A DNA stretch of 64,000 nt, taken from NCBI GenBank assembly GCA_965240325.2, contig OZ251240.1, positions 124,001 through 188,000 on the forward strand, read 5' to 3'. Shown in pieces: positions 6,801 to 63,709 of the stretch. This DNA comes from Rebecca billardiae RCC1528 (taxonomy: Eukaryota; Protista; Haptophyta). Below the pieces are notes generated by a model. That model searched no databases. It was not told the origin of the DNA and saw only the letters and a list, made by a program, of their open reading frames with translations. Position numbers and translations under genes: made by a program. Numbering within the stretch: position 1 is the stretch's first letter; each line of letters begins with the position of its first letter.

Positions 6801-9800
6801 CCACCAGCTCGATCGGTGTGCCGTCGGCGAGGTCGGCGCTGCTCGTCAGCATCGCCTCGAGGTTGACGAAGCCCTCCGCCACGATGCCGCCGTCCGGGTG
6901 CGCGTCGCGCACCGTGAAGAACACGTCCGAGTCGCCCGCGTCCGCCGTGCGCAGCGCGCGCGCGAGCATGCGCCACGCGCCGCCCTTGCGCGACACCGGC
7001 AGGTGCGCCGCGTACCCGAAGGCGACCGCCGCGCCGTCCGCACCCAGCGGGCGCACGGGCGACGAGAGCATCGACTCGCTCAGGCCCATGATGTCCACGT
7101 CCACCGCCACCTCGCGAACGGCCGCCGGCGGGCTCGAGCGCCACGTGAGCCGGTCCACGCTCACCGCCACCGCCTTGCCCTCGCTCGCGAGCTGCGTCGA
7201 CTCGCGCGGCGGCGCCACGGCCACCGACGCGGCCACCGAGGACGCGGGCGACGCGAGCACCGAGCGCAGCGCGTCGACGGCGCGCACGCTCACCACCAGC
7301 TCGCCCAGCAGCCCGCCGCCGCCCGTGCGCTCGAGCTGCACCGGCTCGTCCTGCTTGTCGCGCCCGCGCTCGAGCAGCTGCTCCAGCAGCACGCTCGCCT
7401 CGCCCAATGGCGCCGCCGAGCCCTCGCGGCTCGTGTCGAGCAGCCGGAAGCGCACGACCGAGTCGGCCCGCGTCGCCGAGCGCAGCGCGCGCTCCACCTG
7501 CGCCCACTCCGCGCTGCCGCTCGACAGCACCACGCCCGTCGAGAAGTCGAAGTTGAGCTTGCGCCGACGCAGCCGCGGCTCGGAGCGCGGCGCGGGCGAG
7601 CGCAGACCCATCACGTCCACCTCCACCGCCACGCTGCGCACGCGCTCGCTCACGCCCGAGCTCGCGAGCGCGAGCGCGCCCACGCGCACGTCGATCTCGC
7701 CCGACTTGAGCGCCGGCGCCGACGGCACGCTGCCGCCCTGCGCCTCGATCGACTGCTTGACCGCGCGCAGCAGCGGCAGCGCGTGCACGCCCACGCGCAG
7801 GTCGGCGAGCGCGACACCGGACGCGTCCACCAGCTCGATCGGTGTGCCGTCGGCGAGGTCGGCGCTGCTCGTCAGCATCGCCTCGAGGTTGACGAAGCCC
7901 TCCGCCACGATGCCGCCGTCCGGGTGCGCGTCGCGCACCGTGAAGAACACGTCCGAGTCGCCCGCGTCCGCCGTGCGCAGCGCGCGCGCGAGCATGCGCC
8001 ACGCGCCGCCCTCGCGCGACACCGGCAGGTGCGCCGCGTACCCGAAGGCGACCGCCGCGCCGTCCGCACCCAGCGGGCGCACGGGCGACGAGAGCATCGA
8101 CTCGCTCAGGCCCATGATGTCCACGTCCACCGCCACCTCGCGAACGGCCGCCGGCGGGCTCGAGCGCCACGTGAGCCGGTCCACGCTCACCGCCACCGCC
8201 TTGCCCTCGCTCGCGAGCTGCGTCGACTCGCGCGGCGGCGCCGCGGCCACCGACGCGGCCACCGAGGACGCGGGCGACGCGAGCACCGAGCGCAGCGCGT
8301 CGACGGCGCGCACGCTCACCACCAGCTCGCCCAGCAGCCCGCCGCCGCCCGTGCGCTCGAGCTGCACCGGCTCGTCCTGCTTGTCGCGCCCGCGCTCGAG
8401 CAGCTGCTCCAGCACCACGCTCGCCTCGCCCAATGGCGCCGCCGAGCCCTCGCGGCTCGTGTCGAGCAGCCGGAAGCGCACGACCGAGTCGGCCCGCGTC
8501 GCCGAGCGCAGCGCGCGCTCCACCTGCGCCCACTCCGCGCTGCCGCTCGACAGCACCACGCCCGTCGAGAAGTCGAAGTTGAGCTTGCGCCGACGCAGCC
8601 GCGGCTCGGAGCGCGGCGCGGGCGAGCGCAGACCCATCACGTCCACCTCCACCGCCACGCTGCGCACGCGCTCGCTCACGCCCGAGCTCGCGAGCGCGAG
8701 CGCGCCCACGCGCACGTCGATCTCGCCCGACTTGAGCGCCGGCGCCGACGGCACGCTGCCGCCCTGCGCCTCGATCGACTGCTTGACCGCGCGCAGCAGC
8801 GGCAGCGCGTGCACGCCCACGCGCAGGTCGGCGAGCGCGACACCGGACGCGTCCACCAGCTCGATCGGCGTGCCGTCGGCGAGGTCGGCGCTGCTCGTCA
8901 GCATCGCCTCGAGGTTGACGAAGCCCTCCGCCACGATGCCGCCGTCCGGGTGCGCGTCGCGCACCGTGAAGAACACGTCCGAGTCGCCCGCGTCCGCCGT
9001 GCGCAGCGCGCGCGCGAGCATGCGCCACGCGCCGCCCTCGCGCGACACCGGCAGGTGCGCCGCGTACCCGAAGGCGACCGCCGCGCCGTCCGCACCCAGC
9101 GGGCGCACGGGCGACGAGAGCATCGACTCGCTCAGGCCCATGATGTCCACGTCCACCGCCACCTCGCGAACGGCCGCCGGCGGGCTCGAGCGCCACGTGA
9201 GCCGGTCCACGCTCACCGCCACCGCCTTGCCCTCGCTCGCGAGCTGCGTCGACTCGCGCGGCGGCGCCGCGGCCACCGACGCGGCCACCGAGGACGCGGG
9301 CGACGCGAGCACCGAGCGCAGCGCGTCGACGGCGCGCACGCTCACCACCAGCTCGCCCAGCAGCCCGCCGCCGCCCGTGCGCTCGAGCTGCACCGGCTCG
9401 TCCTGCTTGTCGCGCCCGCGCTCGAGCAGCTGCTCCAGCAGCACGCTCGCCTCGCCCAATGGCGCCGCCGAGCCCTCGCGGCTCGTGTCGAGCAGCCGGA
9501 AGCGCACGACCGAGTCGGCCCGCGTCGCCGAGCGCAGCGCGCGCTCCACCTGCGCCCACTCCGCGCTGCCGCTCGACAGCACCACGCCCGTCGAGAAGTC
9601 GAAGTTGAGCTTGCGCCGACGCAGCCGCGGCTCGGAGCGCGGCGCGGGCGAGCGCAGACCCATCGCGTCCACCTCCACCGCCACGCTGCGCACGCGCTCG
9701 CTCACGCCCGAGCTCGCGAGCGCGAGCGCGCCCACGCGCACGTCGATCTCGCCCGACTTGAGCGCCGGCGCCGACGGCACGCTGCCGCCCTGCGCCTCGA

Positions 9801-12800
9801 TCGACTGCTTGACCGCGCGCAGCAGCGGCAGCGCGTGCACGCCCACGCGCAGGTCGGCGAGCGCGACACCGGACGCGTCCACCAGCTCGATCGGCGTGCC
9901 GTCGGCGAGGTCGGCGCTGCTCGTCAGCATCGCCTCGAGGTTGACGAAGCCCTCCGCCACGATGCCGCCGTCCGGGTGCGCGTCGCGCACCGTGAAGAAC
10001 ACGTCCGAGTCGCCCGCGTCCGCCGTGCGCAGCGCGCGCGCGAGCATGCGCCACGCGCCGCCCTCGCGCGACACCGGCAGGTGCGCCGCGTACCCGAAGG
10101 CGACCGCCGAGCCGTCCGCGCCCAGCGGGCGCACGGGCGACGAGAGCATCGACTCGCTCAGGCCCATGATGTCCACGTCCACCGCCACCTCGCGAACGGC
10201 CGCCGGCGGGCTCGAGCGCCACGTGAGCCGGTCCACGCTCACCGCCACCGCCTTGCCCTCGCTCGCGAGCTGCGTCGACTCGCGCGGTGGAACCGCGGCC
10301 ACCGAGGACGCGGGCGACGCGAGCACCGAGCGCAGCGCGTCGACGGCGCGCACGCTCACCACCAGCTCGCCCAGCAGCCCGCCGCCGCCCGTGCGCTCGA
10401 GCTGCACCGGCTCGTCCTGCTTGTCGCGCCCGCGCTCGAGCAGCTGCTCCAGCAGCACGCTCGCCTCGCCCAATGGCGCCGCCGAGCCCTCGCGGCTCGT
10501 GTCGAGCAGCCGGAAGCGCACGACCGAGTCGGCCCGCGTCGCCGAGCGCAGCGCGCGCTCCACCTGCGCCCACTCCGCGCTGCCGCTCGACAGCACCACG
10601 CCCGTCGAGAAGTCGAAGTTGAGCTTGCGCCGACGCAGCCGCGGCTCGGAGCGCGGCGCGGGCGAGCGCAGACCCATCACGTCCACCTCCACCGCCACGC
10701 TGCGCACGCGCTCGCTCACGCCCGAGCTCGCGAGCGCGAGCGCGCCCACGCGCACGTCGATCTCGCCCGACTTGAGCGCCGGCGCCGACGGCACGCTGCC
10801 GCCCTGCGCCTCGATCGACTGCTTGACCGCGCGCAGCAGCGGCAGCGCGTGCACGCCCACGCGCAGGTCGGCGAGCGCGACACCGGACGCGTCCACCAGC
10901 TCGATCGGCGTGCCGTCGGCGAGGTCGGCGCTGCTCGTCAGCATCGCCTCGAGGTTGACGAAGCCCTCCGCCACGATGCCGCCGTCCGGGTGCGCGTCGC
11001 GCACCGTGAAGAACACGTCCGAGTCGCCCGCGTCCGCCGTGCGCAGCGCGCGCGCGAGCATGCGCCACGCGCCGCCCTCGCGCGACACCGGCAGGTGCGC
11101 CGCGTACCCGAAGGCGACCGCCGAGCCGTCCGCGCCCAGCGGGCGCACGGGCGACGAGAGCATCGACTCGCTCAGGCCCATGATGTCCACGTCCACCGCC
11201 ACCTCGCGAACGGCCGCCGGCGGGCTCGAGCGCCACGTGAGCCGGTCCACGCTCACCGCCACCGCCTTGCCCTCGCTCGCGAGCTGCGTCGACTCGCGCG
11301 GTGGAACCGCGGCCACCGAGGACGCGGGCGACGCGAGCACCGAGCGCAGCGCGTCCACGGCGCGCACGCTCACCACCAGCTCGCCCAGCAGCCCGCCGCC
11401 GCCCGTGCGCTCGAGCTGCACCGGCTCGTCCTGCTTGTCGCGCCCGCGCTCGAGCAGCTGCTCCAGCAGCACGCTCGCCTCGCCCAATGGCGCCGCCGAG
11501 CCCTCGCGGCTCGTGTCGAGCAGCCGGAAGCGCACGACCGAGTCGGCCCGCGTCGCCGAGCGCAGCGCGCGCTCCACCTGCGCCCACTCCGCGCTGCCGC
11601 TCGACAGCACCACGCCCGTCGAGAAGTCGAAGTTGAGCTTGCGCCGACGCAGCCGCGGCTCGGAGCGCGGCGCGGGCGAGCGCAGACCCATCACGTCCAC
11701 CTCCACCGCCACGCTGCGCACGCGCTCGCTCACGCCCGAGCTCGCGAGCGCGAGCGCGCCCACGCGCACGTCGATCTCGCCCGACTTGAGCGCCGGCGCC
11801 GACGGCACGCTGCCGCCCTGCGCCTCGATCGACTGCTTGACCGCGCGCAGCAGCGGCAGCGCGTGCACGCCCACGCGCAGGTCGGCGAGCGCGACACCGG
11901 ACGCGTCCACCAGCTCGATCGGCGTGCCGTCGGCGAGGTCGGCGCTGCTCGTCAGCATCGCCTCGAGGTTGACGAAGCCCTCCGCCACGATGCCGCCGTC
12001 CGGGTGCGCGTCGCGCACCGTGAAGAACACGTCCGAGTCGCCCGCGTCCGCCGTGCGCAGCGCGCGCGCGAGCATGCGCCACGCTGTGCTGTCTGGCCGC
12101 ACCGCGAGCCGCGCCGCGTGCTCGAAGACGACAGGAGCGCGGCCGTCGCCGGTCGGCCGCGTCGGCGTCGTGATCAGCGCCGACGACAGGCCCATCACGT
12201 CCACGTCCACCTCGATCCGCTCAACCGCCAGCGGCACGTCCGCGCGCCACGTGAGGCGGTGCACAGCGATGCCGAGCGCGTCTTCGCCCGCGCCCGCCGC
12301 GCTCGCGGCGAGCGGCGGCTCGGGCGGCACGGACGCGCCGCTGGCCGCCACGCCTTGGCGCGGCGGTGGCGGGGCGCCAGTGCCCGCGCCGAGCGCGCCG
12401 CCGCCCGCGGCGGGCGCCGCCGCGCCGGCCTTGACCGCGCGCAGCGCGTCGAGCGCGCGCAGTGTGACGACCAGCTCTCCGACCGCCGAGCCGCGCGCGC
12501 TCACGAGCTGCAGGACCTCGTCCTCCTGGTCGCGGCCGCGCTCGAGCAGCTGCTGGAGCGCGGAGGCGGCCTCGCCGAGCACCGTCTGCTGCCCGCCGCC
12601 CACGTCGAGCAGCGTGAAGCGCACCTCCGACTCCGCCCTCGTGCCCGAGGTGAGCGCGCGCTCCAGCCTCGCCCACTCGGCGCTGCCGGCCGCGAGCTCG
12701 ACGGCGGTGTCGTAGTCGAAGCGCACGCGGCGGCGGCTGAGCACGGGCTCGGAGCGCGGCCTGGGCGTGCGCAGGCCCATCACGTCGATCTCGACCGCCA

Positions 12801-14010
12801 GCTCGCGCGCCGCGCCGTCGCGCGCGCCCGTCGCCCACGTGAACGCGCCGACGCCGACGCGCATGCGCTGCGTCGACACGCGCGGCGACGCGGGCACGAC
12901 GCCGCCCTGCCGCTCGATCGATGCCTGCACGGCGCGCAGCAGGGGCAGCGCGACGACGCCGCAGGACAGCTCGCCGATGGTCGCGCCCTCGAGGTCGTGC
13001 AGCTCGATCGTCGCGCCGTCCGCCATGTCGCGCGCCGACGCGAGCTGGTCCTCCAGGTTGACAAACGCCTCGCCCAGCACCGCGCCGCCGCCCGCGCGCG
13101 CCGTGTCGCGCAGCGTGAAGAACACGTCCGTGTCGGAGCGCTCGGGCGTGCGCAGCGCGCGCTCGAGCAGGCGCCACGCGCGCGAGCCGCTGGCCACGTC
13201 GATGTGCGACACGTACTCAAAGTACACCGAGCGCTCCTCCGCGCCCACCGCGCGCGGCGGCGTGGTGAGCAGCGAGTGCGTCAGGCCCATCACGTCCACG
13301 TCCACCGCCACCTCGCGCACGCCCGCCGGCGCGCGCGCGCGCCACGAGACGCGCGAGACGGAGACCTTGATGGCCTCGCCGGCGGCGGCGCGCGCGGCCG
13401 ATCGCTGCGCCGCCTCCGCGTCCGCGCCGCCCGGCCGCTTGCTCGGGTCGATCGGCTTGAGCGAGGGGAACGGCGCCAGCGGCTCGGGCGGCGCCGCGTC
13501 GGCCGCGGTGCGCGCGGGCGGCACGGCGAGCGTGGCGGCGGTCGTGCCCATCGAGCCGTTCAGCGCCCGAAGCGCGCGCACGCACGTGACGCTCACGCGC
13601 ACCTCGGCGATTGGCTGGCCGTGCGCGTCCTCAAACGTGAGCGGCTCGTCCACCATGTCGCGCTCGGTACTCAGGAGCGACGGCAGCGAGATGCGCGCGG
13701 AGCCGACGCGCTCGCGCTGCGCGGGCTCGCGCAGCGTGAGGACGACGACGAGGGCCGACCGCCGAGGCGTCGAGAGCCGGTGCGCCGCGTCGTTCCACGC
13801 GCTCGTCGCGGGCACGAGCTCGACCGAAACGCGGTGCCGGAAGTCGATCGGCGCGTCGGTGCGGTGCGGCGCGGACGGCGCGGGCGGCTCGAGGCCGGCG
13901 ACGTCGATCTCGACGAGCACGCGCTCGAAGAGCGACGAGATGTCCCGCGCGAAGTCGCCGAGCCAGCGGAGCTCGCCGGCGACGACGTTGATGCGCTCCG
14001 CCTCCGTCAT
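842..14010 (-). CDS. Giant (~4,248 aa) protein: ~17 tandem RPGRIP1 C-terminal (RID)-like C2 domains, ~8 EF-hand pairs, coiled coil, IQ-like motif. Exons 14010-2105, 1980-1361, 1256-1170, 975-842
   Basis: First ATG of the 4011-aa ORF is at 14010 (14136 is GTG). Three GT-AG introns (2104-1981, 1360-1257, 1169-976) splice in frame to a TGA at 844-842. The repeated domain V.VDVMGL...F.F...VRF.L.D...LGEA.V.LEQLLERGRD...LGELVVSVRA.DALR resembles RPGR1_C. Canonical EF loops DRNNSGSITRTE and DADGDGKISFAE. Confidence 0.85.
3500..5100. repeat. Five near-identical EF-hand-pair modules (312-348 bp period)
   Basis: taccgggcgaacgactcgcg recurs at ~3671, 3983, 4331, 4679 and 5021. Confidence 0.95.
6232..12085. 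repeat. Near-identical intragenic tandem array, ~5.7 units of 1014/1026 bp, each encoding two C2-like domains
   Basis: The agcatgcgccacg anchor recurs at ~6965, 7991, 9017, 10043, 11057 and 12071 (spacing 1026,1026,1026,1014,1014). Units differ by a few SNPs and a 12-bp indel. Confidence 0.97.
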
Positions 14011-14372
14011 GCTGGCGGCAAGGCGCCAAGGCGTGTGTTTTGGCCACTTGAACTCAGCCGTCGGCAGGCGGCAGGCAGACCGTCGTCGTTCCGCTCGCGC
14101 GCCGTGCCGCCGTCGTCGGCGCGACTCTGTGTTCACATCATTCTGATGACAGTCACGATGTCACTGTCATATGCACTGGGCCGAAATCCCTAATCGACGC
14201 GGTCAGTTGGGGCGCGCACTTCGCCCTATGATGACTGACGCACAGTGACGACGACAACAGCCGCGTCAGTTGCAGCTTTTTGGCTGCCACTTTCGCCGCC
14301 GCTGCTTGAAGCTGCAAGCGGGGGCTTGGGACAGCTGGTGCGAGGGCGCCTCGACTCGCCAGCGGCCCGGCG

Positions 14373-25299: not shown

Positions 25300-25348
25300 G
25301 AACTGGGCGCTGGAGGCGCTTAGCGCTGCGGGCGCCGCCCCCTGAGCG

Positions 25349-25442
25349 CTCCGAGCGGCAGCAGCGCCAAGGGGCGCTCACAGTCACAGCCATAGGCACA
25401 CAGCGCGCTGTGAGCGCCCCTTGGCGCTGCTGCCGCTCGGAG
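25349..25442. repeat. Perfect 35-bp inverted repeat with a 24-nt loop
   Basis: 25349-25383 ctccgagcggcagcagcgccaaggggcgctcacag is the exact reverse complement of 25408-25442. Confidence 0.95.
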
Positions 25443-26493
25443 TGGCCCGCGGCGGGCGGATCGAGAAGCCTCCGACTGCGTCAAGTCTGACTCATCTGCT
25501 GACGACTTTTGAGCTGCCATCGCAGCAGTCTTCCGCAACCGCGGCCAGTGTGAGTCGTGTGAGTCTGTGACCTGTCCGGCCGCTGCTCGCGGCGGAGTCG
25601 GCGGCGGGCGGGCCCTGGGCGTGGGCCTGGGCCTGTGTCTGTGAGTAGTCTGTAGTGTGACGAGTGTGAGTGTGACAGTGAGTGTGCGACTGCCGCCGCC
25701 GGGCTCACTACTATCATCACTATAGTCACTCGGCGACTGCGAGGGCCCGACTCCGAATGACCGAATATTAATCGTGGCGGCATCAGCGCGCGCGCCAATT
25801 TTCCATATATACTATTTATTTCCGCCGCAATCGACTGGGCCGGCGGCCAGGCCCAGTGGCACCGCGTCCGGGACTGTCCGGGACGCTCGCAACGCTGCGC
25901 CGGCGCATCACACTTTCACAGCGACGATGATGCGTGATGCCGCCGTCGTAGTAGTACGTGCCTGGCAGTCACGCGCATGCAGCGCGCAAGGTGGCAGTCG
26001 ACACAGTGTAGGCACCGGCCACCGCGCGCACTGCTGATCGTCCGACAGCGGAGCCGGAGAGTCCGACGCCCGCCGACGGCGCTTCGGAAGGTCGTTATTG
26101 TCTTCTGCCTGCAGGAAAAACTAATATTGCGCTGCTGCCGTCAAGCAAAACGAACATCTGCGCGCGATAAAAAGAAATTAAATCTTCGCCACCTTGCGGC
26201 CTCGTGCTGCGTGCTCCCGCGCCGATCACGGTGCGCCGCGGCGAGGGGGCGCGTGCACGCGCGGGCGCCGCGCCGCGCGGGGCTCCCAAGGATTCAAACT
26301 TTTCATCCAAACTAGCTACTAGACCGCAATCCCTGAGCGAGATTACTACGGGGATGAGGGAGCCAGCCGCGCGGGCGCTGGGGAGGAGGGCGCGCCGCCG
26401 CGCGCGCGCGCGCGCCCGCCCGTCTTTGCGCGCCGCGCCGCCCCTGCACGTATAATCAGCGGCCCCGCGGCAGCCCAGCCGCCCGCCGCCTTC

Positions 26494-27489
26494 ATGACGT
26501 GCGCACAGTGCTGCACGGCCCAAATTAGCGCCGCCGCCGTGCAATACGGCGCCGCGCGGCAGTCCTTGCCGCGCGCGCGCCGCGCTCCTGGCGCCGGCGT
26601 CAGTCAGCCGCGCCACACGCCACGCGCCACACGCCACGCGCCACACGCCACACGCCACGCGCGCACTGCCGCGCTGCCGCGCTGCCGCACGCCGCACGTG
26701 GGGCGGAGCCGCTCAGCCGTGCGCGCAACCCCCCCCCTCCCCGCGCGCTGCTGCATCCCTCCGCTTGCGCCAGGCTGCGCCCGCCGACGCCCGCCGCCGC
26801 AGCTGCTGCAGCCGCCGCAGCCGCCGCAGCCGCTGCAGCTGCAGCCGCAGCCGCAGGTGCGCAGCGCGCGCGCCCTCGCGCGCGCAGAGCACACGCGGCC
26901 CGCGGGATGGGGGTTTCACCGTCCGGGCCCTTCAGCCGGACGCCCACCGCAGCAGCAGCACTCCTCTTGCGACGGCCTGCGGCCTCTGCATGGCCGCGCT
27001 GGTCTACTACGGGAGTGCGAGAGGACGCGTCTCTGGCGCCACCCCGACTATTGCGCGGCGCGCGGCCCTCAGCGCTGGGAGCAGGGCTGGGGGCACGTGT
27101 GCGCTGCGTGCCGCAGAGGGGGGGCACGCACGCGCCGCGCGCGCGCACCGCCCGCGTGCGCAGTCAGCAAAAGCGCCGCCGTGGCTCGGCCGTCGCCACG
27201 GCGGTCGTCAACGCTCGACGAGAGCAGCGCCGCACCGCCTCAGCGCGCACGCGGCTGGCAGCATAGGAAGCGCCGTGGGCCCACTGCCACGCGCGCGTCG
27301 ATCGCGGCCCACAGCGCCGTGCGCGCCGCACGCGCGCCTGCCGTGCGGCTGCTGCGGTCGGGACCCGCGGCGCCCCCCGCCCCCTGCCTCTGCGCGCGTC
27401 GGACCTGCGGCTGCGCTCATCGCCGCGCGCGCCCGGCGGCGCCCGCGCGCGTGCGCAGCAGGGCCGCAGCCGCGCCGGAGCGCATCTGA
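26494..27489 (+). CDS. Possible small spliced hypothetical protein (structure unresolved)
   Basis: ATG-initiated ORF. Coding-like Cys/Trp-rich blocks (MTCAQCC...; RECERTRLWRHPDYC...WEQGWGHVCAAC) alternate with intron-like GC tracts. Confidence 0.3.
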   Translation: MTCAQCCTAQISAAAVQYGAARQSLPRARRAPGAGVSQPRHTPRATRHAPHATRHARTAALPRCRTPHVGRSRSAVRATPPLPARCCIPPLAPGCARRRPPPQLLQPPQPPQPLQLQPQPQVRSARALARAEHTRPAGWGFHRPGPSAGRPPQQQHSSCDGLRPLHGRAGLLRECERTRLWRHPDYCAARGPQRWEQGWGHVCAACRRGGARTRRARAPPACAVSKSAAVARPSPRRSSTLDESSAAPPQRARGWQHRKRRGPTATRASIAAHSAVRAARAPAVRLLRSGPAAPPAPCLCARRTCGCAHRRARPAAPARVRSRAAAAPERI

Positions 27490-29663
27490 CGGCGGGCGCG
27501 CCGCGCTGCTACTTGTCTCCGCCGCACCGCCTTTCCACCCGCCGGCGTCGCCGCCCGTCCATCGCTTCCCAGGGCACTCGCGCTGACGCTGCCGGCGGCA
27601 ATGGCGCCGTGCGAGTCTGCCTGTGGCGCCCGTCTACTGTACAGTGATGCCAGCGGATATGACGACGTCTGCGACTGCAGCTGTCTGACGACGCGGACTG
27701 TGACGGTCAGCGTCCGACGATTGACGACGACTCATTTTACACCGCCGACGATGTATCACGCGGCCGGGCGTACGCCAGACACATCACGACGACTCGGCCT
27801 GACCGTTATTCTTTATTATAATAATATTTATAATAATACAATAACTGAATTATTAATAATATATTTAACGACGTGGCAGCATCGGACAAGCGTCAGTAGG
27901 CTCAGAGTGCAGCAGACACATAGAATGCGTCCGCGCCTTCCGTCCAGGTCAGACAGTGCGCCACCCGCAGCCCTGCCCCCCTACGGGAGCGGGGCCGCCG
28001 GGGTCAGGGTGGAGCACCGCCTCGGCCTGGGGCACGCGGCGGCGACGGCAGATGCCGCCGCGGCCGAGCGCCTTCCGGAGCACTTGGATGAGGGTGAGGT
28101 CGTATTCGATGTCGCCGCCCGCCGACCTAGCGGCGAGTAGCTCCGGCAAGCGGCAGCCGCGGCTGTCGCCCCCGTGCGCCCGCGTGGGCGCCTGGATGAG
28201 GATGAGGTCGTAGGACGCGTCGCCGCGCGCCGGCCAAGCGGCGCGCAGCTGTCGCAGATGAAGAGGGGCTTGGAGAGTGAGCGCGCCGCCTTATATGTAT
28301 ATATACGACTTTTAGTTTTACTCACTGATATCGATTATCAAGATATATATATATATTATTTCACCGGACGTGATGGTAAGCTACGCTATGCAACGGGCAA
28401 GCGTCATCAGGCTCAAACTCAGAGTGGCAGCAGACACAGCATAGAATATGCGTCCGCGCCTTCCGACCAGGTCAGGCAGTGCGCCATTCCATGATTTTAG
28501 ACGATACGATATTCAGAAGATCTGCTCGACAGGAATGATGACATATTCAAGTGTTGGGTTCAAACGCGAGCAGTCCTGCTAAAAACTCACCGGCGCGTTG
28601 ACGGTGCGCCGTCGACGATGACGCCCACCGAGGCAATCTTCGTTCGCTCTTCGGATGAGCAAAGCTAATCCTCCCGCCGAGCCTTTTGGCTGCGGCGAGG
28701 TGACCCGGCGTTTGCGGCTCGGCTTCGGGGAATCTGTTACCTTCCCAAAACCCCGCTCCCGTGCGTCTGCCAATCGCAGGCGTTCCCGACGCACCGCCGT
28801 AAGTCCATCTTTCCCCCACGTATTCGGTATATATAATATGTCAATAGACGTGGGTAACCGATGATGATGCTGGTTGCACACGGTTCGTGATTGTGTGTGC
28901 ACGTTGAGTCCGGACGTCCTGGTCCATGAATGAAACGTTCGAGTCCAAAAGTCGTTCCTTGGACTCTCCCACGATGGCGCCGGGCCATGCCGTGCGGCGT
29001 GCCGCCATCGTACCGCGCTGCGCCGGGCCGTACCGCCCGCGCACGCTCCGCGCCCGTGCCGCTCTGCGCCCGCGCTGCCGCGCCCGCGCTCCGCGTCGAC
29101 GTCGCTCCGCGCCAGCGCTGCTGCGCCCGCGCTCCTGCCGCCGCGGTGCGCCGCGCCGCGCGCGCGGCCGCGCCAGCCAGCCAGCCACCGCTCCGTAGCT
29201 GCTGGCGCCGGCCCGCCTGGTGTGGCGCCGGCCCTGACGTCCCAGCGGCGACGCCATCTGCTGAGATGCGCGCCCCAGGCTGCGTCAGCTCAACATCAAT
29301 AATATTTAAATAGTTATTATTATAATTATCTATCTATATATACATATATATATATATATATACATAGGCGACGCCCACAGGCCGTCTCACTCTGAGTCTG
29401 ATTTAGATTTTAGGCCGGCACGGGTGCATGCCAACGGGCAGGCGTCAGCCGAGTCAGCAAGCGGCAGCAGCAGATCGGGCAGCATATGGGACGGGGCAGC
29501 GCTACTGGATCACTGAACCGTCGCGGGGCATGACACGGATGACGGGTTGCACGCCCCGTCTCAGACTCGAACCGTCGGACCCGACTCTGACTGAAACTGA
29601 GTTACTCGGGCCGACAACTGCGAGCGGTGCCACTACGGCCCGCTGGAAGGCGCCGCGCCCGGC

Positions 29664-37494: not shown

Positions 37495-39190
37495 TCAGTC
37501 TGACACCTTGAGCGCTGCCGCGCCCGCTGCGGCCTCATCCACCGCAGCAGCGCCAGCCGCGGACGGCTTGGGCGGCTCGCCGCCCTGCGCACCCGCGCCG
37601 TCTGCGCCCGCGGCCGCCGCCGCGAGGGCCGCGGCCTTTGCCGCCTTTGCGGCGCGCACCGCCTCCTCCTCCTCCTTCGTGGGCGGCGGCGGGGGCGGCT
37701 CCTGCGCGCGCGACGACAGACGGCACACACGCAGAGCGCGGCGCGCGCCCAGAGCGCGTGAGCTCCGAACGAGGGCGGCGCGCGGCGCAGGGCGCGGCCG
37801 CGTCGGGCGGGCGCGGGGCGCGGCACGCGCGGCGCGCACCGAGCGCGGCTTGGCGCCACCGAACGGGTCCGGCTTGCTCCCGCTCTTCTCCGCCCTGCAC
37901 GCAGCGCGCGGGGAGCGGGCGGGGCGGCTCAGCGGGCGGCGCCACGCGACGCGCTCCGCCAACACCGCGTCGCGCGCGCGGCGGGGCGCGCGCTCGCGCT
38001 CGCACGTGCGCGCACGGTGGTGGGGCTGGCGCGCCACCCTCCGCCTTCTCCACCGGCTTGGAGCGCGGCTGCAGCTTGAGGCGCGGCCGCCCGCCCTCGC
38101 CGCCGCCGCCGCCCTCGCCGCCGCCGCCGCCCTCGCCACGCCCTCGCCCGCCCTCCGGCCCGGCCGCGTACGCCGAGAAGTCGCGAGGCGCCGCGCGCGG
38201 GTCCTGGCTCCACTTGTCGTCCCCGCCCTCGCCCTCACCGCCGTACCGGCTGCCGCTGCTGCGCTCGCGCTCGCCGCCGCGCTCGCCGCCAAAGCCGCCG
38301 CGCTCGCCGCCAAAGCCGCCGCGCTCGCCGCCGCGCTCGCCGCCGAAGCCGCCACGCCCGCCGCCCCGCTCCATCTCGCCGCCGCCGCCGCCGCCGCCGC
38401 CGCGCGGGGCGGAGTAGGAGCTGAAGTCGCGGTCGCCCGCGCGCGGGTCGCGGTCAAACGGGTCGGGACGATCGTCGTACCGCTCGGGGCCGCGCGGCCC
38501 GTCGCGGTCGGCGAAGCCGCCGCGATCGCCGTCGCCGCCACGATCGCCGCCGCGCTCGAAGCCGCCGCCGCCGCCGCGATCGCCGCCGCGGTCGAAGCCG
38601 CCGCCGCCGCCGCCGCCGCTGCGCTCGAAGCCGCCGCCGCCGCCGCCGCCGCCGCCGCGATCGCGGTCGCCAAAGCCGCCGCGGTCGCCGCCGCCAAAGC
38701 CGCCGCGATCGCCGCGATCGCCGCCGAAGCCGCCGCGATCGCCGCGATCGCCGCCGAAGCCGCCGCGATCGCCACGGTCGCCGTACCCGCCACGGTCGCC
38801 GCCGAAGCCCCCGCGGTCGCCGCGGTCAAAGCCGCCGCCGCCGCCGCCGCCGCCGTACCGATCGCCGCCGCCGCCAAAGCCGCCGCCGCCGCCGCGGTCA
38901 AAGCCGCCGCCGCCGCCGCCGCCGCCGCCGCTTGGGCGCCATTGAGAGGAGTTGTCTGCAGCGGACTCGAGAGGCATGCGGTCACCACCCTCGTCGTCGT
39001 ACCGCCGGCGGTCGCCGAAGCCGCCGCGGTCGCCGTAGCGGTCGCCAAAGCCGCCGCGGCCGCCATAGCCGCCATAGCCGTCGCCGCCCGCGTCACCGCG
39101 CGGCGCGGTGGGCAGGTCGTCCTGGTTGGCCTGCGGGCCGAGGAACTCGCCCAGATTCATTGTCTTCCCCTTCACCTTCTTCGGCGCCAT
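37495..39190 (-). CDS. eIF4B-like (plant-type, no RRM seen) DRGG/RGG-rich protein. Exons 39190-38016, 37894-37840, 37701-37495
   Basis: [19 protein letters not shown], a long DRGG tract, [12 protein letters not shown] and [11 protein letters not shown] are eIF4B hallmarks. Two GTGCGC...CAG introns give a continuous frame. Confidence 0.82.
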
Positions 39191-40693: not shown

Positions 40694-41278
40694 CCGCATC
40701 GGCGGCGCGCCGCGCCGATGGCGGTGGGCGCGCCGGGGCGTGCGCGGTGGCAGCGCGGCGAGCCGGGTGCGCGGGCCGCTGCCGCCATGCTCGGATGGAC
40801 AGACTGGGACGAGTGCATCATCGCAGCACGGCGTACGTCCACGAGTCCCGCGCACGGCGGCGGACGGAGGCCGTGCTGAGCCTGAGGCCGTGTCCTGAGG
40901 CCGTGTCCGTGACGACTGACGGCGTGCTGGCGATCTGATCACGGATCCGGTGTGCGCGCGCGGCGAGGGCACGGCAGAATCACGCGCACGTGCTGATGTA
41001 CGGCGGCTACAAGGACGACTACAGAGTAGTGACAGTATGCAGTAGTGCAACAGTACGCGGTATATGCCTCAACGCTACAACTACATTGGCCAGCGCGGGG
41101 GGCTCCATCACCAATGATGCGATGATCAGCTTCGGTCCAACCCAGCGGGCTCATCAGTACTACGCGGTCAAGCCTCTCAGCTGTCGTCGCCGGTGCCGAT
41201 ATGATATTGGACGCGACAATATGAATAAGCGCCGCCGCGGGCTGGAGCCGCCGCGCGGTGTCATATTAGTTCGATATG

Positions 41279-41525
41279 ACTATATATATATATATATATA
41301 TGATGCTGATGCGTCATAGTATTTTCTCAGATCAGCGCACCATCATCGCGCATGCATAGAGAGTAAGAGAGAGAGAGAGAGATCGAGAGAGAGAGAGAGC
41401 GAGAGAGCAGAGAGAGAGTCAGAGAGTGAGAGCCAGACTGATCGAGAGAGAGAGAGAGAGTAGAGTGAGAGAGAGAGAGAAAGAGACGGAGAGCCGGAGA
41501 GCAGACGGAGATAGAGAGAGAGAGA
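41279..41525. repeat. (TA)n and degenerate (GA)n microsatellite tracts between convergent genes
   Basis: Directly visible. Confidence 0.9.
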
Positions 41526-46214: not shown

Positions 46215-46500
<286 letters not shown>

Positions 46501-47279: not shown

Positions 47280-47354
47280 CTAGCGGCGTGCGTAGCTGTG
47301 CCTGATGGCGAGCGGGTTGTCTGCAGACGTCTCGTTCGAGTTGGAGATGCCGAG

Positions 47355-47394
<40 letters not shown>

Positions 47395-47581
47395 AACGTG
47401 CCGGGGCCGGGCTGCGAGCAGCTGCTGCCAAACGCCACGCGGCCAGAGCCGGGCCGGCCGTACAGCCCAGCGGAGGGGCCTGGGTTGAAGTGTGCGCTGC
47501 GCGAGCCCCGTGTGTGCGCAATGAGCGGGTTGTCTGCGGACGTCAGGTTCGAGTTGACGATACCGCCGCCGCCGCCGCCAC

Positions 47582-47612
<31 letters not shown>

Positions 47613-47754
47613 AAAGCTGCCGGGGCCGGGCTGCGAGTAGCTGCTGCCGAAGGCGGGGCCGGGCCCGCCACCGCGGGAGCCTCGGCGGCCGGCGGCCGGC
47701 GCCCCGAACGAGCCTCCGGAGCCTCCGCTCAGCGGCCGGCCCGCGCCGCCGTAC

Positions 47755-47789
<35 letters not shown>

Positions 47790-48662
47790 TCCGTACGAGG
47801 CGGAGCCGGTGCGCGGGCGGCGCTCCGCGGGCGGCGCGGTGCCCTGCGCAAAGTTGACGGCGCGCGGCTCCGCGCGCGAACTGGGTGCCGCGCGCGCCCC
47901 GTAGCGCGACGCGCCGCCGCCACCGCCGCCGACCGCGGGCAGCGTGGGGCGCGCCGCGGCCGCGCGCGGCGGCGGGCCGGGCGCGCGCGACGGCCCGCCA
48001 AAGCGTCCGCCGCGCGGCGGCGCGCCGCGCGGTCCGGCGCGCGCGCGCGCCGCCGCGGCGTCCGCCAGGTCCATCTCCCGCGCGCCGCGCACCATCTGCT
48101 GGAACTCCTCGTGCTTCGAGCGCCAGTTGGAGTGCCACTGCGGAGGCGGGCCCCCGCGCGCGGAGGCGGTGGCGGAGGCGCGCGCGCTGCCCGCGCGGCC
48201 GCGGCCGCCGCGCCGAGCGGAGCGCGAGGCGGGGCCGAACGAGCCGTCGTCACCGCCCACGCGCTGCGCGGCGGACTCGAACCGCGGCCGCGGCTTGGAC
48301 ACCTTGGCGCACGCCTGCTCGTGCCTCGCGATCCTGTCTGGGACAAACGTGCGCCCGCACAGCCGGCACGCGACGAAGCCGAGCGGCGTGCCGCCGCCGC
48401 CGCCGTCGGCCATGTACGCGTCCAGGTCGGCGGCCGTCGTGCTCGGCCCGCTCCCACGCCGCGCCGGCCGCTCGTCGGCGAAACCGTCTGCGCGGCCGCC
48501 GCCCTGCGAGCCCTTGCGCGGCCGGCCCGCCGCCGAGCGCGCGAGCATGTTGGCGACGGTGGCCTCGTCCGGGCGCAGGGTGCACCGGTCGACGTGTATC
48601 TTCAGGCTCGCCGTGCCGTACTCCCGCCCGCAGAACGGGCACGGCCGCCAGCCCGGCGGCAT
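47280..48662 (-). CDS. ZC2HC1-like C2HC zinc-finger protein with a Gly-rich duplicated C-terminus
   Basis: CPFCGREYGTASLKIHVDRC, CRLCGRTFVPDRIARHEQAC.K...RPRFES..QR, NWRSKHEEFQQMVR. Confidence 0.85.
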
Positions 48663-48750
48663 GTCTGTCCCGAGGCGGCTGGCTGCTGCTTGGCTGCCCC
48701 GCGAGTCGGCGGCCAGCGCCGCTTGGTGCGCTGTTCATGACCAAGCAAGG

Positions 48751-49394
48751 TGACAAATCGGATGAAAACCCGTTTGCCGAGCGAGCTAAATCGGCTTGCG
48801 CAAGCCGATTTAGCTCGCTCGGCAAACGGGTTTTCATCCGATTTGTCATAACCGAGGTCACCTGGGGACACCCCGCGAGGGGCTGTTGTCCGTCCCAGTC
48901 TACCGACTCCGGATTTGTTGACGAGGTTGTTCCTTCCCCGCCCGGTCTGTCCCGGGTGTCCGCCCTGCGTGCTCGTCTGCGCTGTGTGGCTTCGTAGAGG
49001 CTCCGGCTTCTGTGTGAGTGTGGGCGGTGAGCCCTTCTGCGGCTGTGGCTTCTTGAGGCTCGTTGTTGTAGCGTTGTTGTTGACCCGGGTGTGACTCGCC
49101 CGGGGGCTGCGCTTTTCGTGGAGCCGTGCTCGTCTTCTGTCGGCGGTGGGTCGTTGTCCGATTTCTGTTCGATTCTTCGTCGTCTCCGGCTCGTCTTCCT
49201 CCCCCCTGGCCGTAAGGCTCTCGCGGGGAGCCGGAGAGCGGGCAAGAACTTTTTGTGGCACGTCGGTAGTGGGATTCGAACAGGCGACTTTAGTCCTGAC
49301 AAATCGGATGAAAACCCGTTTGCCGAGCGAGCTAAATCGGCTTGCGCAAGCCGATTTAGCTCGCTCGGCAAACGGGTTTTCATCCGATTTGTCA
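48751..49394. mobile_element. 644-bp insertion bounded by two identical perfect 98-bp palindromes, with TG...CA ends and a 5-bp TSD (CAAGG)
   Basis: Palindromes at 48751-48848 and 49297-49394 (centre ttgc|gcaa). CAAGG at 48746-48750 and 49395-49399. Confidence 0.92.
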
Positions 49395-50039
49395 CAAGGG
49401 CTTCTGTCACGCCCGGCTTTTTAGAGTGCTCTTTATTTCTTTGCTCGCACCCTTGCTCGCACCAAGGGGCCTCTCGCACACAGTTTCGTCCTGCGGAGCC
49501 GCGCCTGCAAGTTCAGTCCCGCTTCGTCCGGCCCCCGCCAAGACACTGACAAAGCATGGCCCTTGGACAAAGAGTGCCGCCACGCCTGGCGGGCTGTGGC
49601 ACACCGGGCGAGGACGCAGCAGGCGCATCAGCCGACTGAGTAAGCGCAGTAAGTGGGAGGGCGCGTGTGGAGACAACGGTGCAGGCGCGCTCGGGGAGAG
49701 CCGGAGAGTGCGCGACGCGTCGCAGCATCAGCAGACGGAGTGGGCGCCGGGGCCGTGACCACCATCATGTAGCTACGGCTAGTCCGCGGACGGGACCACT
49801 GGCACTGCCAAGTGCTACAGAGTACAGTAATATGTCAGTATGCAGTATATATTAGCTGATGACACTACGTGTGACGTGGTGGCCGCCTGAAGGGCTCCGG
49901 ACGGTGATGACTGATGAGCGGGCGAGCCTCGGCCGGGGCCGTCGGGCGGCTGCAAGTTATTATACCCCATCATCAGCATAATAATCGATATGTACAATAT
50001 TAATACATTACAATATATATATATATATTATGACTAAGC

Positions 50040-50324: not shown

Positions 50325-51236
50325 TCACGCATTAAGCCCATCGGTCATCTCAGCGCCACTGTGATGCCAGCAGTTCAGGGGCGGCGGAGCCTGGCGAACT
50401 CCTCGCGAATGTGCTTCACTGCCCCGATCGTATGCGCTCCACCAATGGGATACGTCGTCGAGATTTGCATCGAGAGGCGTGTCTGGGATGCCAGCCAGTG
50501 CCCACACCATCGCACGCGCCTGCCAGGGAGATGCGACGACGTTGGCAAACGGTACCTCGATGAGCCAGGGAGTGTGGTTCGCAAGCGTACTGCGCGCCCA
50601 CGCGTACCATTTGCGTTGCTCTCGCGTAAAACGCCGCGACGCATTCGCGGGATCGCATGGCGGGCGCGCTCGCCCGGTCCGGTTTTCGAACTGTGCATGC
50701 TCGTTCGGATGGTGGGACCAGTCGTTCGTGCGAGATGCCCAGTGAAATGAGCACTCGACCTGCGCTGCGGGTCGTTCGACGATCACAAAGCGCACACTTT
50801 TGACATGCGCGAGATCTTTAAGAACTGCTCCCGGCGCCGTGTGAGTGCGGAACAATTTGATGACCACGGTGCACTGCTGCGCGCACGCTCTGTTGGCCGC
50901 GAGCTTGCTGTAGTCCTGGCAAAGCGCACGGCGCGTGCCGAACAGCCGTTCCAACGGCGGTCGCGATGGGTCGAAATAGAGCTCGGGCACGATATACTGA
51001 GCAACAGCGCGCGGATGTTCCCTGGGGTGCACAAGGAAGCCCTGGTTGAAGAACTCGTCGAGCCCGATCACGCACGGATGGTACTGTAGCGCCGTCATGA
51101 AGGTTGTGGTGCCCGCGCGCATCGTCCCGACGAGGACGATGATGTCCGCAGGTGGCAAAGGCGAGCTAGAGGATGTGGAAGACGGTAGCAACACCGCAAG
51201 CAAGAGCCATCGTGCCCAGACCGCTTGCCTCGCCAT
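50325..51236 (-). CDS. Secreted/Golgi sulfotransferase-like protein
   Basis: Signal-like MARQAVWARWLLLAVLL; 5'-PSB-like IIVLVGTMRAGTT...LQYHP....EFF; VIKLF; IVER......S (3'-PB-like). Confidence 0.72.
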   Translation of the reverse strand: MARQAVWARWLLLAVLLPSSTSSSSPLPPADIIVLVGTMRAGTTTFMTALQYHPCVIGLDEFFNQGFLVHPREHPRAVAQYIVPELYFDPSRPPLERLFGTRRALCQDYSKLAANRACAQQCTVVIKLFRTHTAPGAVLKDLAHVKSVRFVIVERPAAQVECSFHWASRTNDWSHHPNEHAQFENRTGRARPPCDPANASRRFTREQRKWYAWARSTLANHTPWLIEVPFANVVASPWQARAMVWALAGIPDTPLDANLDDVSHWWSAYDRGSEAHSRGVRQAPPPLNCWHHSGAEMTDGLNA

Positions 51237-51495
51237 CCCTCCGAGCGAGATGCACAGCGCGGGTCCAGACGGGATTCTCATGAAGACGGGGTGCTCAGGC
51301 ATCCCAAGGGCGTTCCCGGGATCCTGCCACACGCTCGCGAAAAGCAAAGCCCCCCCTGGGGGGGCTTTGCCTTTTTCCGTATTCAATGTACCCGCTTCGA
51401 ATGGACGAAGCCCGTTCCAATAGGAAGACGGTTCAATTTGGCGTTGACCGATGCGGGGAACGCCCCTGAGGGTTTCAGATCGGCGGTGCCCGCGT

Positions 51496-61439: not shown

Positions 61440-62143
61440 CGCCGCGGGCACACCCTCGCTGGGGCCAGCGCCACCCCGGTGCTCGCGAAGTCGGCCAGCT
61501 GATCTGCTCGAGAGTCGAGAAGCGGGGAGAGGGGCGGGCTGGGCTGCCGGCTGCACACGTGCGATGCCGGTCGTGCGCCGCCGGTCGGCGAATGCTCAAA
61601 GTTGAAAGTAGAATGATCTGAAAGTCTGCGGTGCTCGCAATCATCTTTCGGACACGGAGTTGAGGCCGGTGCTGCTCTGGCTGCTCTCACTTTTGGCCCT
61701 TTCGGGCTTTTCCCGCCTCGGGAGAGTTTACTCACCGGCCTTTCGCGGGCGGAAAGAAAGCCGGAAACGGACAAGCTGTCCACTCCGAGGGGAGGGCATG
61801 ACCGCATAGCTCGCGACCGGGCTGCAACTACAGTTCTATGCGAGCAGCTGGGCCGCAGCGCGCAGACAGTCACACGCGCTGAGGCGAAGCCAAGCAGCGT
61901 GCAGTTGACTTTGGCAGCGGCGCAGCTGAGCGGGCGCCGGCCATCGGCTCAACTATCAGATTGCGTAGTTGCTCCCTACGCCCGGCGCCGTCAACCGTGC
62001 GTCCCGTGGCGTCGCGGCCACCGTTGTGGCAAGTACTTAGTGCATGTGCAGCCACAGCAGGCAGAGCGACACTACTACTACTCACTACTGTCAATATTGT
62101 TACACTTACTACAGTCCAGCCGTCAGCAGGCCGCGATCTACAT

Positions 62144-62864
62144 TGACACTGCGCCAGAAGGCCGGGGGCGTCCAAAATTGTCCCCGCCGACGGCTCGATG
62201 GCTGCCGCACTTGCGTGCCCCGCGTGCCTTGCGCGTGTACGTGCACCGGGTAGGGCGCCCCGACAGCGAGGGCGGGGTGGCGCAGATGGTCTCGTGGGAG
62301 GTGTGCCAGTGTGCCGGAGACGCTTCGACACCTTGGTGCCGTGCCCACACCTCCGTCCTTGTGCCCACACCTACGCCCGCGCCCGGCAGGACCTTGTGCC
62401 CACACCTCCGCCCGTCCACCATGACAACACTGAACACGTCGTGGGTTCGAGTGCACGGCTTGGGATTGATGCACGAGAGCTACTACGACGGCGGCAGAGA
62501 GCCGCATAGGGTGGGACTACCCGCACGCGCACTCACTACGGCTCGATCCGCCCGACATTGGCCTTGCACGCGCAGGCGTGCTCTCAACACGGCTCGGGTC
62601 GAGCACGCAGCAGGCAAGCGGCGACAAGGAGAGGTGTCTGGTATGGGCACGCCACCAAGGTGTCGAAGCGTCTCCGGCCACATTCGGGGCTCGGGCGCAC
62701 CGCTCCCACAAGACCATCTACGCCACCCCGCCCTCGCTGTCGGGACGCCCTACCGTGCACGTACACGCGCAAGGCACGCAGTCGCGGGGCACGCACGTGC
62801 GGCATCCATCGAGCCGTCGGCGGGGACAATTTTGCCTCCCCCCCGGCCTTCTGGCGCAGTGTCA
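62144..62864. mobile_element. Foldback/Mutator-like non-autonomous element with ~200-bp imperfect TIRs
   Basis: 62144-~62351 is the diverged reverse complement of ~62640-62864. Ends TGACA...TGTCA. Flanks gatctacat / gttctacaa match at 7 of 9 positions. Confidence 0.7.
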
Positions 62865-63709
62865 GTTCTACAAGTACAAGGGGCACAAGGCAGTCAAGGG
62901 CGGCGCGGTCGTCCGGTCCGAGGGCAAGCGGGCAAGGACACGGGAGGCATAGCCGGGCTCCGGCTATCGCTGTTGGCAAGGATAGTAGAGCGCTTCCGTC
63001 CGTCGTGGAGCGGACAGGAACCACCCGGCCGAGTTAGCCGACGGCGGCACGGAGGTGGCAAGGGCGGTCGAGGTGCCGCCGCGCCTGCCGAACCTCCCGA
63101 GGGACGCATGTCTCTGATTCTTAGTAAACTGTAGATATTCAAGTACTTGTTACCCGGGTTGAACTCTACGGCCATATGTCATAGCCATCTATATATAATA
63201 ATAGTACTCATCATCTACCCCACCCGTCAGATTCAAAGAGAACCCGCCAATAATCAGAGCAGCGACCAGGTCGTAAAATTCCGAGGGCGCAGATATGTAT
63301 ATATATATATGTGATGATGATCTACAATCGCGCGCGAGGCGGTCAAATTTTGCACTCCGCCCAAATCGCCCATGGCTGCGCCGAGCTGCTTTTCGAACTT
63401 TTGGAAGCTGCATGATATCATCAAGTCATCAGCTGACCCGCCTTGATGCCCTGATTATCATACTACTTTTATGGCCGGTACTCCTGGATACTGCGCCCGG
63501 GAAGGGCCACCCCCAAGCGGCGTGACTTCCAAAAGCCGCTCTTCGCTCCCAGTCCGGCGCACGTTTGCGACGACACGCGACTTCCCGACGACGACAGGCG
63601 GCGGGGAGGCGGCGCTAACGTTGCAGTAGTAGGCTGTAGGGCGGACCCCACCGCCGGGGCAGGCACCCTCCGCCACCGCCCCCTGGGACGTGCGCGCGCG
63701 CGCCGAGCC

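Follow-up and report, generated by a model that had tools for sequence, protein, structure and literature searches.

The 64-kb window (the whole stretch of DNA analysed here) carries a 644-bp non-coding element that is bounded on both sides by the same 98-bp perfect palindrome. The structure is real and unusual, and its layout can be explained by known transposon mechanisms. Terminal repeats usually separate retroelements, where they are direct, from DNA transposons, where they are inverted; an element whose repeats are direct and inverted at once defeats that rule, and programs that search for LTR or TIR elements would misfile it. The chances seem about evenly balanced that this is a young, non-autonomous DNA transposon of the terminal inverted repeat (TIR) type, that relies on an external DDE transposase or integrase and has end modules that act in the manner of a composite transposon; its main rival is a TRIM-like retroelement.

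The element and its surroundings

The DNA of the window is nuclear and eukaryotic, has a GC content of about 73% and contains long AT and GA microsatellites. Its genes, which include PUF/R3H, SET, thioredoxin, PAP2 and zf-C2HC_2 genes, have 92-98% GC at third codon positions, and no tRNA genes (ARAGORN, default settings) or Rfam families at gathering thresholds are present in it. The features of the element and its host neighbour are as follows (unstranded unless a strand is given).

47280-48662, minus strand: zf-C2HC_2 gene (two fingers), host neighbour; start codon 88 bp from the element
48746-48750: target-site duplication, left copy, CAAGG; identical to 49395-49399 and abutting the element
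48751-48848: left terminal module, a 98-bp palindrome, TG...CA, 51% GC; its own reverse complement
48849-49296: non-coding core, 448 bp, 63% GC, low complexity; no codon-position bias, family match or homolog
48849-48883: sub-terminal weak inverted symmetry, left; pairs with 49262-49296
49262-49296: sub-terminal weak inverted symmetry, right partner; pairs with 48849-48883
49297-49394: right terminal module, identical in sequence to the left one
49395-49399: target-site duplication, right copy, CAAGG; identical to 48746-48750

A script comparison bears out what a first-pass annotation had read from the letters, namely that 48751-48848 and 49297-49394 are identical and that each is its own reverse complement; every 98-bp palindrome consists of two 49-nt arms with a spacer of 0. 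The first bases of the 644 bp are TG and the last are CA; owing to its symmetry, each palindrome has these same TG...CA ends, as that annotation also had it. CAAGG directly abuts both the TG... end and the ...CA end and constitutes the 5-bp target-site duplication that had been described; such exact bracketing would arise by chance about once in 1000 cases. On their inner sides the modules are flanked by TAACC and AGTCC, which resemble neither each other nor CAAGG. The clean duplication and the non-coding core agree with the earlier view of a young non-coding insertion.

A coding core can be ruled out, in keeping with the annotation's ~450-bp core without recognisable coding: its GC content is flat over the three codon positions (0.61/0.62/0.65, versus 0.92-0.98 at the third positions of host genes), the one core open frame compared with Pfam gave no match, and two core open frames have no relative among the 5.8 billion clusters or 1.84 billion representatives of the protein libraries. 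There are only 41 A residues on the plus strand of the core; the minus strand is accordingly poor in T, which leaves two core frames open there. The palindromes (51% GC) and the core (63% GC) are both AT-richer than the host (~73-80% GC). The heptamer AAATCGG occurs twice in each arm at a spacing of 33 nt, and nine of its ten copies in the window lie inside the element; these pairs could resemble paired protein-binding sites, a likeness to which little weight is given. Short words common to the arm and the core are not more frequent than in shuffled versions of the core.

When the 49-nt arm was sought with up to 3 mismatches, only four matches were found in the 64-kb window (0 expected), and all four are the arms of the element itself; sensitive self-BLAST found no further fragment of it in the 64 kb. 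As far as seen, the element is thus single-copy, which here means single within 64 kb. When the window was scanned for paired inverted repeats that have TG..CA ends and a 5-bp duplication, the hits were this element and six GC-rich pairs whose arms are only 11-15 nt long, which are taken here as chance matches.

A distance of 88 bp separates the element from the start codon of the minus-strand zf-C2HC_2 gene (47280-48662) downstream of it, and at this short distance the insertion is in the promoter or 5′ leader of that gene; it may affect the promoter. On the plus strand, its junctions display GT at 48750-48751 and AG at 49397-49398, and removal by splicing from GT to AG would excise the element together with one copy of the duplication and restore the uninterrupted site exactly. 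The same junction trick is used by the algal introner MITEs, small MITE-like elements that are GC-poorer than host exons (PMC9860276). By a hand estimate, about 2% of random 5-bp duplications would permit such an exact restoration; the GT..AG arrangement is found on the plus strand only, where no gene is present at the element, and it is recorded as a lead only. The element is like introners in being small, GC-poorer than its host and non-coding and in having repeats, a short duplication and GT/AG junctions, but it is intergenic, upstream of a minus-strand gene, and has no known family of copies, whereas introners are sense-strand introns of genes and have many copies.

Proposed outer-end mobilisation and the retroelement alternative

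According to the preferred explanation, a miniature composite TIR element, each 98-bp module would be a 49-bp terminal inverted repeat fused to its mirror image, in effect a minimal MITE without an interior, and every module would carry one left-type and one right-type end. A trans-encoded DDE transposase or integrase would bring together the outermost pair of ends and mobilise the 644 bp jointly, cutting the target with a 5-bp stagger whose repair would give the CAAGG duplication. The ends might have become doubled through two solo 98-bp insertions followed by joint movement, or through a doubling of the end, and the data fit both; we infer these origins of the doubled ends, as we do that the enzyme is provided in trans. 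One 5-bp duplication surrounds the entire unit and neither module has one of its own, as is characteristic of composite elements and macrotransposons. This single duplication shows that the 644 bp entered the site in one piece, and inner flanks unrelated to CAAGG are as expected if the last move used only the outer ends. The element is also small and non-coding, with terminal inverted repeats and a target-site duplication, as MITEs are. MITEs further have many near-identical copies in a genome, and of this element one copy is seen in the 64 kb and none in the collections searched.

Both halves of this explanation have precedents, which by analogy lend it some support. MADE1, a human mariner-derived MITE of 80 bp, is a near-perfect palindrome with a 6-bp spacer that occurs solo (PMC1784062). 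It resembles the modules described here in consisting of two terminal inverted repeats with almost no interior and in forming a stable hairpin when transcribed; they differ from it in that they are 98 bp long and have no spacer, and in that an identical pair of them surrounds 448 bp, with a 5-bp duplication around the pair. Two closely spaced Ac elements in maize can form a macrotransposon, whose outer ends mobilise the intervening DNA (for composite transposons and Ac macrotransposons, see PMC9910405, PMC4270019). There too the outer ends of two copies are used jointly and a single duplication flanks the whole, but the modules of such composite or Ac-derived units are full or fractured elements of kilobase size with 8-bp duplications, whereas those of the present element are 98-bp palindromes that are putative as solo elements. 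The lower GC content of the element relative to its host may likewise be compared with that reported for small MITE-like elements.

Because the repeats are palindromic, they cannot by themselves tell a direct from an inverted arrangement, and the adjoining bases were tested instead. Gapped local alignment detected no significant inverted symmetry there (score 12 versus a shuffle mean of 10.1, with 352 of 2000 shuffles scoring equally well or better), and a control in the direct orientation also scored 12. When the two sides were compared without gaps from the palindrome boundary inwards, about 18 of 35 positions matched (P ~0.007-0.017 under two null models). A continuation of inverted symmetry for ~35 nt beyond the palindromes is thus a borderline, weak signal, and the first-pass annotation, which had noted weak symmetry here and favoured TIRs over LTRs, overstated it.

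Its other ground for that preference, the lack of a clear primer-binding site or polypurine tract, stands for both orientations. The first TGG on the plus strand lies 15 nt inside the left repeat, and none occurs in the first 30 nt on the minus strand, in a test for which the window offers no tRNA gene for comparison and which an unusual primer would escape. Purines make up 16 of 30 and 14 of 30 bases beside the repeats in the two orientations, and no purine run exceeds about 5. That the arm and the inner right end derive from a tRNA-like or Pol III-type sequence was rejected, the resemblance being noise: ARAGORN finds no tRNA-like sequence at its default and 90% thresholds, at 80% it reports 49261-49341 on the minus strand at a setting that gives about 245 matches in the window, and Rfam gives no tRNA match in the element at E<=10. 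MicroRNA precursor families (mir-5985 and others, Rfam) were rejected as well; the best match, 52.9 bits against a gathering threshold of 100, reflects base pairing alone.

The TIR explanation is supported by the single clean 5-bp duplication and by the absence of a primer-binding site, polypurine tract and tRNA-like sequence beside the repeats. The inverted similarity past the palindromes (P ~0.01), which an LTR element would not predict, and the AAATCGG pairs in each arm, arranged like paired binding sites, point weakly in the same direction. Counting against it, TG..CA ends with a 5-bp duplication are the classic LTR signature, and no solo 98-bp module, longer relative or transposase was found in the 64 kb or in the collections searched. 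In addition, the four arms show 100% identity to one another and the bases next to them no more than about 50%, a combination for which one round of reverse transcription is the more economical source.

These last points are the strength of the TRIM-like alternative, in which the element would be a non-autonomous LTR retroelement, the palindrome would be its LTR, both copies would have been regenerated from one template, and integrase would have inserted the product with a 5-bp duplication. This is a rather unlikely reading. In its favour are two identical 98-bp direct repeats, each TG..CA, a duplication that falls within the 4-6 bp (mostly 5 bp) of LTR elements, a total length of 644 bp, and the fact that a single step would explain identical repeats beside non-identical neighbouring bases. 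The element is like TRIMs in being <1 kb long and non-coding, in lying near genes and in its short identical direct terminal repeats with TG..CA ends and a 5-bp duplication; it is unlike them in having no primer-binding site by the 5′ repeat and no polypurine tract by the 3′ repeat, and in having repeats that are perfect palindromes. In neither orientation does a TGG-initiated site or a purine tract adjoin the repeats, and the tRNA-like appearance at the right repeat is noise, as ARAGORN reports it only at the 80% threshold. No precedent for a palindromic LTR was found in the literature, and weak inverted symmetry inside the repeats is unexpected for a retroelement.

The enzyme that moved the element would, to judge from its TG..CA ends and 5-bp duplication, probably belong to the retroviral-integrase group of DDE enzymes. 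This group, with TG..CA termini and duplications of 4-6 bp, serves LTR elements, Ginger1 (4 bp), Ginger2/TDD, Polinton (6 bp) and IS3/IS481. Ginger2/TDD elements have inverted repeats of 50-180 bp, 4-5 bp duplications, TGTNR termini and an integrase-like transposase (PMC2836005, PMC10045372), and the present element resembles them in its 98-114 nt inverted repeat, its 5-bp duplication and its TG..CA-type ends. The two differ in that the terminus here is TGACA and not the defining TGTNR, in that Ginger2 prefers AT-rich targets and this element lies in CAAGG, and in that no integrase-like gene was found in the window. The earlier proposal of integrase mobilisation thus holds in so far as the ends and duplication fit LTR elements and Ginger2/TDD, but it does not extend to the Ginger terminus. 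In foldback elements, too, inverted symmetry dominates the ends, but these are long, consist of sub-repeats and account for most of the element's length; the inverted repeats here span only 98-114 bp of the 644 and contain no tandem sub-repeats. Known mechanisms suffice for the structure, and no described family fits it on the features tested.

Palindromic ends, hairpins and relatives

A less probable proposal, and a doubtful one, is that an undescribed integrase-mobilised family uses the spacer-less palindrome itself as its functional end. In such a family one sequence would serve as solo element, as LTR-like repeat and as TIR-like repeat, and the arms would be kept identical by hairpin-templated correction and not by youth alone. 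If it were true, the family would have an architecture between those of LTR and TIR elements, and its GT..AG junctions could let it create introns. That the family is undescribed, as the first-pass annotation suggested, agrees with the finding of nothing similar in viral, metagenome and prokaryote collections, in protein databases or in the literature, and it holds only for these. Exact terminal 28-mers and 24-mers and a two-anchor pattern had no match in the viral, metagenome and prokaryote collections, a full-text search of papers with the element sequence gave only chance primer matches, and the literature on palindromic LTRs and on palindromic termini with duplications contained no matching architecture that could be found. 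No locus for the neighbouring zf-C2HC_2 protein was found in the metagenomes, and hence no empty site was obtained. The longer copies encoding integrase, reverse transcriptase or the like that the annotation had proposed to look for are absent from the 64-kb window, and none of the 29 window ORFs scanned against Pfam is an integrase-like transposase.

Still less probable, and very unlikely overall, is that the palindromes work as hairpin or cruciform ends, priming a linear DNA intermediate or protecting it until an integrase inserts it. Each end can indeed form a loop-less 49-bp hairpin, and the single strand has a predicted folding energy of -215.7 kcal/mol (z = -28 relative to shuffled versions), but any abutted inverted repeat folds in this way, so that the structure is no evidence of function, and the predicted fold pairs the two palindromes with each other as readily as each with itself. 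The element encodes no replication or resolution protein, no such protein was detected among the 29 window ORFs scanned against Pfam, and an ordinary DDE enzyme suffices for the 5-bp duplication. The annotation's suggestion of a replicative or priming role for hairpin ends finds no support in any test, and the element codes for no initiator or resolvase.

It is highly improbable that the sequence is not mobile at all and is a fold-back assembly artefact or a local duplication that resembles an element, since, even though long perfect palindromes are a known weak point of assembly, a fold-back would mirror its flanks and the palindrome flanks here are unrelated, two identical copies are bracketed by an exact 5-bp duplication (chance about 1 in 1000), and a short-read contig from run ERR14847151 is 100% identical over 2474 bp to the assembly at 25413-27886, away from the element, where the assembly is sound.

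As a single copy, the element is a curiosity. Should this genome contain a whole family of them, the family would illustrate how minimal palindromic MITEs acquire host DNA and carry it along, and it could also supply small RNAs from perfect hairpins close to genes. Each module, if it is transcribed, would give a 49-bp perfect hairpin, which is likely to be a substrate for small-RNA processing.

Other repeats and genes of the window

The contig from Logan run ERR14847151 mentioned above (L001) contains the ORF at 26494-27489, and its 100% identity indicates that the same organism was independently sequenced with short reads. In exact look-ups of the window ORFs in Logan, 1 of 34 distinct sequences is on record (in ERR14847151), which suggests that this run covers the genome thinly or that gene calls are sparse; among the sequences without a match were frames expected on contigs that would stop at the palindrome, and versions with alternative start codons. 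L001 starts within an imperfect hairpin at 25333-25458, which has 51-nt arms at 86% identity (35 nt perfect) and a 24-nt spacer. Two direct repeats of ~90 nt (27879-27963 and 28390-28486; 81% identity, 511 bp apart), each following an AT-rich stretch, enclose a GC-rich segment that itself contains a 108-bp duplication; the end of L001 at 27886 suggests that further copies exist elsewhere in the genome.

Positions 62144-62864 hold another non-coding element with inverted repeats; it is 721 bp long, and its arms of ~220 nt are ~87-90% identical. Its termini are TGACAC...GTGTCA, and the end pentamer TGACA is common to both elements. The flanks, GATCTACA and GTTCTACA, match at 7 of 8 positions with a 1-nt offset on the left, which suggests an 8-bp duplication; kinship with the 644-bp element was rejected on account of this apparent 8-bp duplication, so that the second element probably belongs to another superfamily. 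It lies inside a long plus-strand ORF (61899-63134) that has no Pfam match.

At about 5300-13400 there are some seven tandem units of 1026 or 1014 bp with 99-100% identity; on each strand they fall within very long ORFs, such as the minus-strand one at 2101-14136. The ORF beside this array (1088-5422) has no family match. Positions 3209-5097 contain 276-bp and 348-bp tandem repeats (3.7 copies at 95%), and the minus-strand translation of these looks by eye like calcium-binding EF-hand loops. An AT dinucleotide repeat of ~200 bp runs into a GT repeat at 46220-46500, and AT-rich islands lie between very GC-rich genes at 29290-29370, 41260-41310 and 49990-50030. The minus-strand ORF at 50325-51302 resembles, by eye, a membrane-anchored sulfotransferase and has no Pfam match; its third-position GC of 0.70, as compared with 0.92-0.98 in its neighbours, may point to a recent foreign acquisition. 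Finally, long GCC/GGC-rich repeats at 38200-38950 and 47300-47850 encode glycine-rich, low-complexity protein segments.
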